Shown here: piece by piece, positions 4,419 to 59,331 of the stretch
Layout: each line of letters opens with the position of its first letter
Numbering within the stretch: the stretch's first letter is position 1
Sequence record: NC_007623.1
Reading direction: 5' to 3' (one strand)
Length of the DNA: 64,000 nt
Notes under the pieces: model-generated
What the model was told of the DNA's origin: nothing
Database searches by the model: none
Seen by the model: only the letters and a program-made list of their open reading frames with translations
Program-made: the position numbers and the translations under genes

Positions 4419-4450
4419 AACTACCAAGTGGGCTAGCCCACTTGGTAGTT
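4419..4450 (+). terminator. hairpin terminator
   Basis: Perfect 14-bp stem AACTACCAAGTGGG-ctag-CCCACTTGGTAGTT just after the stop codon. Confidence 0.75.
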
Positions 4451-17328: not shown

Positions 17329-17351
17329 TCAAGTCTATATTACTTGGGTGA
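17329..17351 (+). promoter_or_regulatory. phage early promoter
   Basis: tcaagtcTATATTACttgggtga; exact 23-nt duplicate at 59309. Confidence 0.8.
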
Positions 17352-18617: not shown

Positions 18618-18640
18618 TCAGGTCTATATTACCTTTGTGT
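18618..18640 (+). promoter_or_regulatory. phage early promoter
   Basis: tcaggtcTATATTACctttgtgt. Confidence 0.75.
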
Positions 18641-24417: not shown

Positions 24418-24451
24418 TACTCCAGGAGAGCCGTTGGGCTCTCCTGGAGTA
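24418..24451. terminator. bidirectional terminator
   Basis: 15-bp stem TACTCCAGGAGAGCC-gttg-GGCTCTCCTGGAGTA. Confidence 0.8.
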
Positions 24452-28512: not shown

Positions 28513-28550
28513 TATACCTACTGGGAGGTGTGAACCTCCCAGTAGGTATA
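28513..28550. terminator. bidirectional terminator
   Basis: Perfect 17-bp stem TATACCTACTGGGAGGT-gtga-ACCTCCCAGTAGGTATA. Confidence 0.85.
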
Positions 28551-46118: not shown

Positions 46119-46148
46119 TGTTAATGCACTCCCGCATAAGGAAACCGT

Positions 46149-47591
46149 ATGAAACCGACTAACATTACCCTCTTAGACCCCCGGACGATTGTTCCGGGTG
46201 TCTTTAAACCTATTACGTCTACAGACTCATTTGAAGGGATGACCCAGAACCTCAATGATGACGGTCTCTTCTCCCTTGACATCTTCGGTAAACTGGGTAG
46301 TAAACAACGTGATAACACGGAAGCGTATATCGACGTTAAACTTCCCATCTTCAATCCCACTTACCTAAAAGCCCTTATACAGATCAAAAGTCTGTATCAT
46401 TCAATTTTGAAAGGGTCGGAATACGCGGTATGGGATCCCGAACTGAAGGATTTCATAAAATCGAACATCCTGGAAGGGGAAAAGGGTTTCGCCTTCTTCC
46501 TGAAACACTTCGATGAAACCGTCTTCTCCCTGACCCCCTCTCATAAACGCAAACAACGGGTAGAACTGGCGAACCAATTCCGTAACACGGCGTTAACGGA
46601 TAAGGTCCTGGTCATCCCCGCGGGTCTCAGGGATATCCAATTCAATCCAGATGGTTCCCACACCGAACCTGAAATCACTGAATTCTACCGCGCCTTAATG
46701 TTCCGGGTGAGAGTGATCCTCGGGAATAAGGAAGATGCCCTGAACCCCCTTTACGATACCGTTCGGTGGGGGGTACAGAATGCTTTCTTGGAATTGGATA
46801 ATTACCTCTTTGGTTTACTCCAGGGGAAAGGGGGTGTTCTCCAGCGTCGTATGTCCACCCGAGGGGTTCACAACAGCACCCGGAACGTCATTACCGCCCG
46901 TAAAGTCTCCAGGACACGTTTAGACTTCGACGACGGTGTAGGTCCTAACTCTGCGGACATGGGACTCTACCAAGCCCTGCTGAACTTCCCTTATGTCTGC
47001 ATCAATGCGTTAACCAACGGCTACCTTTCCAACATCTTCACCCCCAGCTCTCAAACCGCTAAGCTGGTGAATACCAAGACCCTGGAATACGAATACGCTG
47101 AAGTCTCCCCTGAGGTGGTAGAGAAATGGACCACCGCCACCGGGTTAATGAAACTCTTCAACGGGTTTGCCGATCCCTCCTTACGGAGTAAACCCATTGT
47201 CATTGAGTGGAAATACTTAGCCCTCATTTATGATGATGGGACTGATGTGTGTGTTCTCCATGACATCAACGATCTCCCTCAAGGGAAAGACCGTAAATGG
47301 GTGAAACCTATCACCTACATGGAACTCTTCTACTTGAGTTGCCACAGTGTCATCGAAGAACAGATTACAGGACAAACCCGGTATCCCATTACGGGGATTG
47401 GCTCTATCTTCCCGGCTAAGGTTAACCTACGTACCACCACCAATGCGAGCCAGCGGGTCATTCGTAATCCGATTGATTGGAGTGTGCGGGAAACCTGTAA
47501 ACGGTTCCCTAAACGTGAAGCCCACCCCGATTACTTCGATGCCATGTCCGTAGACCCCTCTAGAGAAGCTTTGCTCGACAGTGACCATGAT
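46149..47591 (+). CDS. rpoC: virion RNA polymerase beta-prime N-terminal subunit, exon 1 (phiKZ gp180-like)
   Basis: DGLFSLDIFG, VLVIPAGLRD, LQGKGGVLQRR, RYP; ends in DSDHD, the first half of the catalytic motif. Confidence 0.93.
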
Positions 47592-47621
47592 TAGATAGTG
47601 ATGCATGATATAAACTCACTA

Positions 47622-47673
47622 TACAACTCCTATTGTATGCGGAAGTGTTCGCATTCGACCATAAGGAGTTGTA
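47622..47673 (+). promoter_or_regulatory. hairpin sequestering the HNH ribosome-binding site, with internal TATG
   Basis: TACAACTCCT (47622-31) is perfectly complementary to AGGAGTTGTA (47664-73), which includes the Shine-Dalgarno. Confidence 0.7.
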
Positions 47674-47676
47674 AAG

Positions 47677-48948
47677 ATGCTAACGTGTTTTGGAAAGAAA
47701 TACGTGTTGTCTACAACCAACACGGTTTACAATGTCACCGATAAGACAGATGTTCCAGTCCATCGGATGACAGACGGGAATACGTTCTTCATCGCACGGG
47801 GCGATGAAAACGAACTGGTTAAGATCAAACTGGGGTTAATGATCCTCCATGGAGAAGGAAAGTTCCATCTTCCTCTCTCTGAATGGGAACAGGTGAAAGT
47901 AGGTTTTCTGGATGACGATACAGGAAACTTTGCAGCGGATAACCTTTACTTGGTCTATCCTGAAGAGGGCATCCCTTACCCTGAACTCTCTGGGTACTAC
48001 TACATCCCTGGGTTTGAACTCAACGCAATCAACCGAGACGGTGTGGTATACCGAACAGTTAGAAAGAATCTTTACCCACCGTATCTGGGTGGTAACACCG
48101 TTCCTAACAGTTTCTACCCCTTTGTTCGACTGGATGTGGTCAGTGGGGATGAACGCAAGTATGTCCACCGGCTACTGGCGGAGACCTTCGGTAAGCCGCC
48201 TAAGGGCTACCCCAAGCTACTGGTCGACCATAATGACGGTAACAAGATGAACTTCAAGCTCTTTAACTTGATTTGGGTTACCGCTAAGGACAACTCCTTC
48301 AAAGCGTACAACAATCAAGAAGCGAGAGCGGACAATAATCCCTTGGAGGTTTTTGACAGGGAATTAGGTCAAGTCTTTAAGTACGTCAGTCAAAATGAGT
48401 TTGCGAGAACCATGGAGGTGGATTCTTGGTGCATTAGTCTGGTACTCAAACGTCCTCGTTCAGTGTACAAGAACAGGTACGTTCTTCGTCGGAAGGGAGA
48501 TACACGTGACTTCCAAGAGATCTGGGACTATAAGCCCCCTGTGGGTAAGAAGATCCTTGCCCGGAATGTCTTCACCGGTGAAATCACGGTGTATAATTCA
48601 TTGGCGGAGGCCTCTAGAGCAACACAGGTAGGGACAACAGGCATCCTGACGTCCCTGAGTAACACCAACCCGAGATCCGCCTTTAAAGACCTTCAATTCA
48701 AGCGGGAGTCTGACGAGACCCCTTGGCCTGATTTGAATGAATACGAACTGGAATGCATCCGGCGCAAGATGCACCCTGCTACAGCTGTGTATGAAATGTT
48801 TGATTCGGTAACCCAGGAGACGTCGATTGTGTATGGCGTTGATGCAGTTACCCGAATCACCGGAGCCAATCCCCGTACCGTTATCGTTTGCGCACGAGAA
48901 GGTAAGTTGCTCCATTCCCGTTATCGTTTCAAGAAACTTACACGTTAA
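47677..48948 (+). CDS. intron-encoded HNH homing endonuclease with NUMOD1/IENR1-like repeats
   Basis: VHRLLAETF...VDHNDGNKMNFKLFNLIWVTAKDN; three C-terminal repeats such as VYNSLAEASRATQV. Confidence 0.92.
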   Translation: MLTCFGKKYVLSTTNTVYNVTDKTDVPVHRMTDGNTFFIARGDENELVKIKLGLMILHGEGKFHLPLSEWEQVKVGFLDDDTGNFAADNLYLVYPEEGIPYPELSGYYYIPGFELNAINRDGVVYRTVRKNLYPPYLGGNTVPNSFYPFVRLDVVSGDERKYVHRLLAETFGKPPKGYPKLLVDHNDGNKMNFKLFNLIWVTAKDNSFKAYNNQEARADNNPLEVFDRELGQVFKYVSQNEFARTMEVDSWCISLVLKRPRSVYKNRYVLRRKGDTRDFQEIWDYKPPVGKKILARNVFTGEITVYNSLAEASRATQVGTTGILTSLSNTNPRSAFKDLQFKRESDETPWPDLNEYELECIRRKMHPATAVYEMFDSVTQETSIVYGVDAVTRITGANPRTVIVCAREGKLLHSRYRFKKLTR

Positions 48949-49363
48949 CGAGTTTATATCCATCACTTAGTCCGGCTAGGCACGAAAGTCCTAGACCGTA
49001 TTCCTCTGAATTGCTGGGAGTTCACAAAAGTCTGTTGGCTACAACGTAACTGGAAACAGTAAGCGTGAATGCGACCGAAAGGTAGAAAGAACAACAGACC
49101 TGACCTACGCTAACCAATAACGCTAAGGGTCGTAAACAAGGGACAATCAGCCGCTAAGACGCTACCGGGTATTAAACCCTATGCGTAAAGTTCAACGACT
49201 AAGGGAGTTATGACCCTGTACACCTACCAAGGAAGGGGGTGGAAGTGGAGGAGACCTAAGGGGGAATAGACCTATTCCCTACGGTCAAGATATAGTCTGG
49301 CCCTGTTTAATAAACAGGCAGGCACCTGAGTGTGCCGGGTCCTAGTACGGACTGACCACCGCG

Positions 49364-49546
49364 GGCGATCAATTGTCGAGCCATTCTGTTGTAGCGGAAG
49401 ACAGCAAACAACAGGCCTACGAACTCTTTGGGAAACGGGAGTATTACATCAGTGGTACGGGTCGGTTTTTGTACGATCCGATCAATGAACCGATTCTCTT
49501 TATGTTTAAAGCAGCGACGAGCGGCTTAGAGGATATTGAGGTATGA
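49364..49546 (+). CDS. rpoC: virion RNAP beta-prime N-terminal subunit, exon 2 (60 aa, absent from the ORF track)
   Basis: Reads GDQLSSHSVVAEDSKQQAYELFGKREYYISGTGRFLYDPINEPILFMFKAATSGLEDIEV*; completes DHDGD; stop overlaps the next ATG (ATGA). Confidence 0.9.
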   Translation, partial: GDQLSSHSVVAEDSKQQAYELFGKREYYISGTGRFLYDPINEPILFMFKAATSGLEDIEV

Positions 49547-59308: not shown

Positions 59309-59331
59309 TCAAGTCTATATTACTTGGGTGA
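59309..59331 (+). promoter_or_regulatory. phage early promoter
   Basis: tcaagtcTATATTACttgggtga, identical to 17329..17351. Confidence 0.8.

Follow-up and report, generated by a model that had tools for sequence, protein, structure and literature searches.

The gene for the homing endonuclease gp185 is embedded in the transcription unit of gp184 by way of an intron (47592-49363), and the question raised by this locus is how a gene in such a position can be controlled separately from the gene that carries it. An earlier note on this DNA had proposed an answer modelled on I-TevI of phage T4, in which the ribosome binding site is locked in a hairpin and a late-promoter motif inside the hairpin gives rise to RNAs that escape the lock. 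Our analysis bears out the first half of this proposal, since a hairpin masks the ribosome site in every intron-borne relative compared, whereas the evidence on the promoter half points in both directions. The window referred to below is the whole stretch of DNA that was analysed, the final 64 kb of the record of Pseudomonas phage EL (100% identity; Elvirus, Chimalliviridae); record positions equal window positions plus 147215, and all features described lie on the plus strand.

The gp184 intron and its endonuclease gene

The first exon of gp184, a virion RNA polymerase beta'-like gene, extends from 46149 to 47591 according to its open reading frame and the record annotation, and its final codons read DSDHD. 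A TAG stop follows directly after ...GAC CAT GAT, and the frame reopens at 49364 (GGC GAT CAA...), from where a second exon (GDQLSSHSV...DIEV stop; 49364-49546, by frame reading) continues to a TGA that overlaps the ATG of gp186. The interval between the exons (47592-49363) can be classified as a group I intron that begins with the in-frame TAG and ends in a terminal G before exon 2. It contains a core recognised by Rfam (Intron_gpI, RF00028, at 48945-49317; 51.1 bits where the gathering score is 50, E 4e-11), a U47591-G48970 pair and the terminal G49363, and its removal restores the reading frame at DSDHD|GDQ. Joining the exons yields DSDHD|GDQLSS, a junction that we take to be the NADFDGD-type metal-binding catalytic motif of the largest polymerase subunit, and the intron thus appears to interrupt the DxDGD catalytic motif encoded by this virion RNA polymerase beta' gene. 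The EL exon junction is shared by loci L017 and L019, and the ends of the homologous phiKZ intron agree with published RNA ends. The consequence for annotation is that gp184 exon 2 and the intron are both absent from the EL records. The annotated gp184 runs from 46149 to 47594 and is labelled "RNA polymerase beta subunit".

A fold of the joined intron flanks, together with direct reading, defines P1. Its 5' strand (GAU|UAG, 47589-47594) faces the internal guide sequence UUAGUC (48967-48972), which forms the 3' strand of P1 and contributes the G48970 that pairs with the splice-site U47591. In the same fold, P1 is extended by a long-range pairing of 47598-47617 with 48950-48966 (GUGAUG/CAUCAC and AUAUAAACUC/GAGUUUAUAU; joined fold -30.5 kcal/mol), the 3' strand of which begins 2 nt past the endonuclease stop codon. 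The extension encloses the loop that holds the endonuclease gene, and P1 and its extension therefore place gp185 and its leader in the P1 loop. The AGTCCGG block that follows the endonuclease stop is conserved in L017, L018, L019 and L023, and the ribozyme core (P2 to P9) together with the intron 3' end occupies 48945-49363 in the Rfam alignment.

The gene in this loop, gp185 (47677-48948), encodes an HNH homing endonuclease of 423 aa, as indicated by its annotation, by homologs in the same intron context and by a Pfam HNH_3 domain (PF13392, E 4.7e-11, residues 161-207); H164, H185 and N206 are invariant across the protein alignment of homologs. Intron-encoded HNH endonucleases have been described in chimallivirus RNA polymerase genes, namely phiKZ gp179 and gp72, Goslar gp206 and PhiPA3 gp210 (PMC11620839, PMC12676376). 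In each of these, a hairpin covers the ribosome site. A tblastn search with gp185 identified homologs in Raoultella phage ZK_P1, Shewanella phage FishSpeaker, Photobacterium phage PDCC-1, phiKZ (gp179) and Goslar (gp206), all with the same synteny: tail lysozyme gene, beta' exon 1, HNH gene, ribozyme core, exon 2 and the next polymerase gene. The gp185 homologs in other chimalliviruses share 24-35% identity in the protein alignment, and the position of the intron differs from that in EL: phiKZ has it 6 nt further upstream (GAD|FDGD), whereas in ZK_P1, FishSpeaker, PDCC-1 and L023 it lies 6 nt further downstream (DGD|QL).

In addition, two protein searches and exact-contig look-ups contributed metagenomic relatives: six EL-clade sequences, L023, L040, L041, L042, L044 and a free-standing homolog, L043. 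The six EL-clade endonucleases are 52-72% identical to one another, within a range of 28-72% across the endonucleases compared. A locus scan of IMG/VR returned only phages that had already been found and a metagenome scan gave no matches; the six-protein alignment proved too divergent for such scans.

The hairpin over the gp185 ribosome site

In the leader of gp185, TACAACTCCT (47622-47631) is the exact reverse complement of AGGAGTTGTA (47664-47673), which is the perfect 10-bp stem that the earlier note had placed at these positions. The first five bases of the right arm, AGGAG (47664-47668), are the Shine-Dalgarno sequence, located 8 nt before the gp185 ATG at 47677, and the left arm is accordingly an anti-Shine-Dalgarno sequence, flanked by two further pairs at 47619-20. 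RNAfold agrees with this reading: the minimum free energy fold of 47618-47682 consists of the 10-bp outer stem, three more pairs and a 7-bp inner stem. The inner stem had been noticed as ATGCG (47637-47641) paired with CGCAT (47650-47654), and the prediction lengthens it to seven pairs (47637-43 with 47648-54), giving a stem-loop AUGCGGA/UUCGCAU with a 4-nt loop at 47637-47654. The fold energy is -22.1 kcal/mol, against -10.8 +/- 2.5 kcal/mol for 200 dinucleotide shuffles, none of which was as stable (z -4.5), and an identical hairpin is predicted when the leader is folded within a 146-nt context.

A perfect 10-bp stem is by itself unremarkable in this genome. The window contains 81 inverted-repeat pairs (10-nt exact seeds within 60 nt), most of them short-loop, G+C-rich and terminator-like, and the unusual part is that this one covers the Shine-Dalgarno sequence. 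For gp185, positions -16 to -6 have a mean unpaired probability of 0.18; among the 58 genes called in the window, whose median is 0.45, this value ranks second from the bottom. Thus, the view that the gp185 Shine-Dalgarno sequence is sequestered in a stable structure on read-through RNA is well supported by structure prediction.

The comparison with relatives extends this view beyond EL. Over 131 nt that span the hairpin, seven EL-like genomes (97.6-100% identical) vary only at G47645A, in the apical loop, and at one base of codon 2; covariation is uninformative at this distance, and the variation that exists fits the structure. At greater distances, each of the 16 distinct intron-borne loci has a hairpin directly 5' of its endonuclease start, with the right arm on the phage's own Shine-Dalgarno sequence. 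In the 12 loci of the first round the unpaired probability of that sequence is 0.01-0.36, a range reached by only 22% of EL control genes, and the folding z-scores are negative in every case (mean -2.4); the four further intron-borne relatives have the same arrangement. The leader fold of the free-standing homolog L043 contains no Shine-Dalgarno hairpin. The leaders themselves are unalignable, a multiple alignment of them being unreliable. The presence of hairpins in 16 of 16 intron-borne loci from leaders that cannot be aligned therefore argues that the structure is under selection, and we conclude from these sequences that the ribosome-site lock is a selected feature of this family of intron endonucleases.

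The picture in other HNH genes is more varied. In phiKZ gp72, which lies in a different polymerase intron, a short hairpin covers the ribosome site, and the more distant HNH gene of HPP-Temi has a clear hairpin. No hairpin was found at the likewise more distant HNH genes of Totoro, C-ZP2022, AVP1, phiKp_32 and OMKO1, for which the annotated starts are uncertain. HPP-Temi and these five were excluded from the statistics.

The TATG motif and competing explanations

The motif TATG is present at 47636-47639, 3' of the left arm as the earlier note had observed, and is a candidate late start-site motif for the non-virion RNA polymerase (nvRNAP), with a predicted +1 at G47639 (EL record 194854). The earlier note is right that TATG is the phiKZ late motif and overlaps the start: the phiKZ late promoter is TATG with the G as +1, a sequence that is necessary, is not sufficient and is frequent in the genome (PMC4666361). 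Further determinants in the flank, downstream of the motif, are needed in phiKZ. In the present set, 11 of the 16 hairpins contain TATG (EL, L017, L018, L019, L024, L025, ZK_P1, Goslar, L040, L041 and L042), and the remaining five have TATAG (phiKZ, L023, FishSpeaker and L044) or TATAA (PDCC-1). The number expected from dinucleotide shuffles is 4.4 for TATG (P about 5e-4) and 9.1 for TAT[AG], which is found in 16 of 16 (P 6e-5); these statistics take no account of shared ancestry and are inflated accordingly, since relatives are not statistically independent, though the leaders are otherwise randomised. The position is also constant, in that the motif never begins before the left arm reaches its 3' end. 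An unbiased scan of all 256 4-mers between -55 and -18 found TATG alone to be common to the six EL-clade leaders, the runners-up being present in four.

The location of the motif has consequences for the predicted structure. For an RNA begun at the G of TATG, the predicted unpaired probability of the EL Shine-Dalgarno sequence rises from 0.18 to 0.65, as would be needed for such a transcript to free the ribosome site. The same start raises the predicted accessibility in seven of eight TATG-bearing relatives, opening the site only partly in ZK_P1 (0.09 to 0.28); in L025, truncation leaves the site closed (0.29 to 0.28). The leaders implied by the motif are 24-46 nt long, within the range of phiKZ late leaders. 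A host sigma-70 promoter was not found in 47400-47800.

Whether EL uses phiKZ-type signals can be judged in part from the rest of its genome. The phiKZ early-promoter core TATATTAC recurs in EL as CTATATTAC, with four copies in the window against 0.18 expected, and at least the virion-polymerase signals are therefore common to both genera. As for late signals, the tail sheath, major capsid and baseplate genes of EL have TATG in the intergenic regions that precede them, and CATTTTATG occurs in exactly three copies in the EL genome, each in sense orientation 65-85 nt upstream of a late gene cluster. The single recurrence of a 12-mer of the hairpin loop, given at the end, points the same way. The context of the motif in the hairpin, ATTG-TATG, has the exact core of phiKZ nvRNAP late promoters on the sense strand (PMC4666361, PMC12809450) and resembles the phiKZ late promoters ...GGTATTGTATGT and P119L ...TATTGCTATG. 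Genome-wide, the intergenic sense regions of EL show no enrichment of TATG (0.0028 per nt vs 0.0027 in coding sequence), and no enrichment is detectable upstream of EL genes within the window. The polymerase lobe that binds the motif is poorly conserved: EL gp80 is only 20% identical to its ortholog phiKZ gp123, which binds TATG, and 3 of 16 pocket residues are identical in an alignment that is weak at that level of identity. The sequence evidence for the use of TATG by EL is thus mixed.

Data on 5' ends in phiKZ come from an ONT-cappable-seq study, a method that pools time points and may miss weak starts in a strongly transcribed operon. A single 5' end is listed near phiKZ gp179, P096 (187788, minus strand), to which no promoter motif is assigned, and its unit ends at T086 (186346). 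In the phiKZ locus (L011), P096 is the first base of the intron (GAT|TAA) and T086 is the G that precedes TTC GAC GGG GAC, and the phiKZ junction is therefore GAD|FDGD. The RNA between P096 and T086 is the excised intron, whose 5' end carries the GTP added in splicing; the authors of the ONT-cappable-seq work gave the same explanation for an equivalent case in LUZ24. The unit that contains gp72 has a similar 5' end, P035 at 64454, 5 nt before the gp71 stop and 1217 nt from T032 at 65671. No internal start is listed for gp179 or gp72 in these cap-enriched long-read data, and a later study also treats both genes as lacking one. Thus, a T4-like internal start is not seen in phiKZ, the one phage with start data, where the gp179 hairpin contains TATAG in place of the TATG of EL. 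Two other starts that the long-read study maps in phiKZ and classes as late promoters, P085 and P097, are listed as ending in ...TATA; in the genome both read TATAG, with the start on the A, and TATAG is therefore a variant that phiKZ does use.

The lack of a listed internal start in phiKZ suits an explanation in which the hairpin acts as a permanent attenuator, holding endonuclease translation very low at all times, with no promoter inside it. The little protein required for homing would then come from breathing of the stem on the pre-mRNA or on the abundant excised intron, and the TATG or TATA would be inherited or a chance product of A+T-rich sequence. In phiKZ, hairpins cover the ribosome sites of both gp179 and gp72, and the mapped 5' ends of the two genes are only those of introns, with no promoter motif; the motif is also short, common and insufficient alone, and shows no genome-wide enrichment in EL. 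Against this stand the retention of TATG as the sole shared 4-mer in six EL-clade leaders that are otherwise scrambled and precede proteins only 52-72% identical, the presence of TAT[AG] in every hairpin at a fixed side of the left arm, and the fact that pooled-time-point mapping can overlook a weak internal start. We regard the attenuator as a serious possibility, though one we would not expect to prevail.

A second explanation retains a function for TATG and assigns it to translation, the ATG within it being the start of a short upstream frame; ribosomes translating this frame would melt the hairpin and be coupled to initiation at the endonuclease start. Frames of 6-8 codons that end beside or overlap the endonuclease ATG do exist in ZK_P1 (with a TGATG overlap), Goslar, L017 and L019. 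The frame is merely ATG-TAA in L018 and L024, however, and in EL it has 36 codons and extends beyond the endonuclease start; in five relatives the sequence is TATA and hence offers no ATG, and no Shine-Dalgarno sequence precedes the ATG in any relative. Also, every TATG case retains the T before the ATG, a base for which a start codon by itself would have no need. Coupling of this kind is therefore improbable in our judgement. Least probable of all is that the hairpin is a ribozyme element, a terminator or an RNA-processing site that covers the ribosome site by coincidence, for although it lies in the P1 loop beside the P1 extension and perfect, mostly terminator-like inverted repeats are common in EL, it is outside the Rfam core, has a 32-nt loop in place of the 2-7 nt loops of EL terminators, is followed by no T-run or terminator, and has a right arm that tracks the Shine-Dalgarno sequence of each relative whatever its sequence.

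Proposed control of gp185 compared with phage T4

The explanation that we prefer is that the hairpin silences gp185 on read-through RNA and that late transcripts initiated at TATG escape this silencing, a combination for which we see an even chance of being correct. Its two parts differ in strength: the role of the hairpin as a translational repressor is well supported by the predicted structures, and an internal late promoter at TATG is plausible from sequence comparison, with the considerations for and against it about equally weighted. On pre-mRNA or excised intron derived from transcription that begins at the gp184 promoter, the left arm (47622-47631) would pair with the Shine-Dalgarno sequence, and gp185 would be translated barely or not at all from such a locked leader. 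The lock would leave the long-range P1 pairing free to form across the 1.35-kb open reading frame. Release would most likely occur through transcripts begun by the non-virion RNA polymerase at G47639. Lacking the left arm and the 5' splice site, these transcripts could act only as mRNA for the endonuclease; their leader would be 38 nt long and their ribosome site open. We infer that TATG may be a working promoter in EL, that it may fire late and that the lock may matter for splicing or for dosage.

The T4 precedent is as the earlier note had described it. In I-TevI, I-TevII, I-TevIII, segB and Aeh1 mobE, the ribosome site is held in a hairpin and is freed on late- or middle-promoter transcripts that start inside or after the 5' arm (PMC2988022). 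As with the T4 intron endonucleases, the EL gene is carried by a group I intron that interrupts an essential phage gene, its consensus Shine-Dalgarno sequence is located about 8 nt before the ATG in a predicted stable hairpin, and the candidate late-promoter motif is placed so that a transcript from it would lack the 5' arm; the 3' end of the endonuclease frame likewise abuts sequence needed for ribozyme folding. The differences are equally clear. The candidate promoter in EL is a start-site motif of only 4 nt, used by a multisubunit phage polymerase, whereas T4 uses a sigma(gp55)-dependent TATAAATA box. The EL gene is in the P1 loop and the T4 genes are in P6a or P9, and the EL endonuclease belongs to the HNH class, unlike I-TevI, which is a GIY-YIG enzyme. 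Also, gp184 itself is probably transcribed by the same non-virion polymerase, and the contrast in timing would therefore be smaller than in T4.

A further difference concerns the purpose of the lock. Chimalliviruses transcribe their genes inside a protein-shelled nucleus and translate them outside it (PMC12908238), and because the two processes are separated in the family of EL, the T4 rationale, in which ribosomes are kept off the folding intron, may not apply. The dosage or timing of a nuclease that needs to be imported back into the nucleus would be a likelier selective reason. More broadly, the hairpin with its TATG or TATA could constitute a family-wide switch in nucleus-forming jumbo phages that limits translation of intron-borne HNH endonucleases to late RNAs of the non-virion polymerase, that arose independently of T4 with a different polymerase and type of promoter, and that serves the dosage or timing of an imported nuclease and not the protection of splicing. 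This wider proposal is a tentative one, and we lean against it as a whole.

The logic of such control is known from T4 I-TevI, I-TevII, I-TevIII and Aeh1 mobE, and what is plausibly new is its occurrence in another phage family. In keeping with the earlier note, which knew of no such description for this locus, the searchable papers mention neither a hairpin at the ribosome site nor a promoter inside the intron for the endonuclease genes of EL, phiKZ or any other jumbo phage, and contain nothing on the expression control of chimallivirus intron endonucleases. A role of these enzymes in the competition between co-infecting phages was demonstrated recently (PhiPA3 gp210). If the proposed control is correct, the locus would be a second, independent instance of the T4 solution, reached from very different transcription machinery, and a natural test case for what turns the 4-nt TATG into a working promoter. 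The conserved ribosome-site lock and the candidate internal late start together amount to a concrete hypothesis that can be tested cheaply.

Two further comparisons concern sequences in and around the hairpin. I-TevI represses its own synthesis, and unlike in that system no operator-like copy of the homing site overlies the EL motif: the exon junction ...GACCATGAT|GGCGATCAATTGTCG, compared by eye with 47625-47645, matches at only about 6 of 11 positions, and an I-TevI-like operator was judged unlikely on this account. A partial copy of the exon end is found at 47597-47609, away from the motif. Upstream of the tail-lysozyme gene, TATG is not conserved in the other relatives and is present in EL and phiKZ. 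In EL, a 12-mer of the hairpin loop, TATGCGGRAGTG, recurs once, in the 5' leader of this neighbouring tail-lysozyme gene (gp183).

Phage phiKZ transcripts and intron insertion positions

The predicted intron of phiKZ gp179, an intron-encoded HNH endonuclease gene (L011:2218-3660; phiKZ 187788-186346, minus strand), has exactly the extent of TU140, a published ONT-cappable-seq transcription unit that runs from 5' end P096 to 3' end T086, with the junction at GAD|FDGD. Another such unit, TU058 (phiKZ 64454-65671; L028:1955 onward), covers 1217 nt across the endonuclease gene gp72; it was compared with the intron at its 5' end, which lies 5 nt before the gp71 stop. Both units look like excised introns and, as such, like evidence of splicing in vivo, in contrast to the ONT-cappable-seq paper, which reports no in vivo splicing evidence for the phiKZ introns.

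Homologous intron-endonuclease units occupy three insertion positions, 6 nt apart, all of which lie within the codons of the catalytic Asp triad and directly follow a GAY codon. These are the phiKZ junction; DHD|GDQ in the EL clade (EL window 47589-47594 and 49361-49369); and DGD|QL in ZK_P1, FishSpeaker, PDCC-1 and the metagenomic relative L023 (loci L008, L009, L010 and L023).

The interrupted polymerase gene and related endonucleases

In EL, gp184 exon 2 comprises 60 codons (window 49364-49546), and its final TGA overlaps the gp186 ATG; neither this exon nor the intron is annotated in NC_007623 or related records. The record labels gp184 'beta subunit', yet the beta' DxDGD motif is present. 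Within the intron, AGTGATGCATGAT (47597-47609), which supplies the P1 extension with its 5' strand, is a near-repeat of the exon 1 end AGTGACCATGAT (47580-47591), 17 nt downstream of it, and could be an insertion relic or an alternative pairing partner. In the EL-like phage HHBS8_1, polymerase exon 1 (L002:1050-2493) is annotated as two overlapping coding sequences, 1050-1802 and 1681-2493, which points to either a frameshift or an error in sequencing.

A single natural control is L043 (1500-1601), a free-standing endonuclease homolog that is 40% identical to the L023 endonuclease and located among nucleotide-metabolism genes; its upstream region contains neither the hairpin nor TATG. In the Pseudomonas phage HPP-Temi, an unrelated jumbo phage, a DNA polymerase intron carries an HNH gene. 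There, AGGAG also lies under a hairpin, in this case of 13 bp (L029:1100-1165), and the loop TATTGTAT is similar to the EL loop TATTGTATG.

Candidate promoters and terminators in EL

The 12-mer TATGCGGRAGTG has exactly two copies in the window, with about 0.015 recurrences expected by chance: one in the hairpin loop (47636-47647, plus strand), and the other about 20 nt before the start codon (ATG) of gp183, the tail-lysozyme gene (46127-46138, minus strand). Most relatives do not conserve the TATG upstream of gp183. In EL, CATTTTATG is a candidate for an extended late-promoter consensus; its three copies in the genome (EL record 60576 and 88166, plus strand, and 117995, minus strand; loci L038 and L039) are all intergenic and in sense orientation, 65-85 nt upstream of the late clusters of gp52, gp78 (the gene for the major capsid protein) and gp112. 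CTATATTAC agrees with the phiKZ early-promoter core TATATTAC and so probably marks EL early promoters; it occurs four times in the window against 0.18 expected (1891-1899, 17335-17343, 18624-18632 and 59315-59323, all plus strand), with genes downstream of three of the four copies.

The window also holds 81 inverted repeats with exact seeds of 10 nt within 60 nt. Many combine a high G+C content with loops of 2-7 nt and common CCCCTAC-like arms, and lie at gene ends (for example 28513-28550, 4419-4450 and 24418-24451); they probably make up a terminator family of EL.
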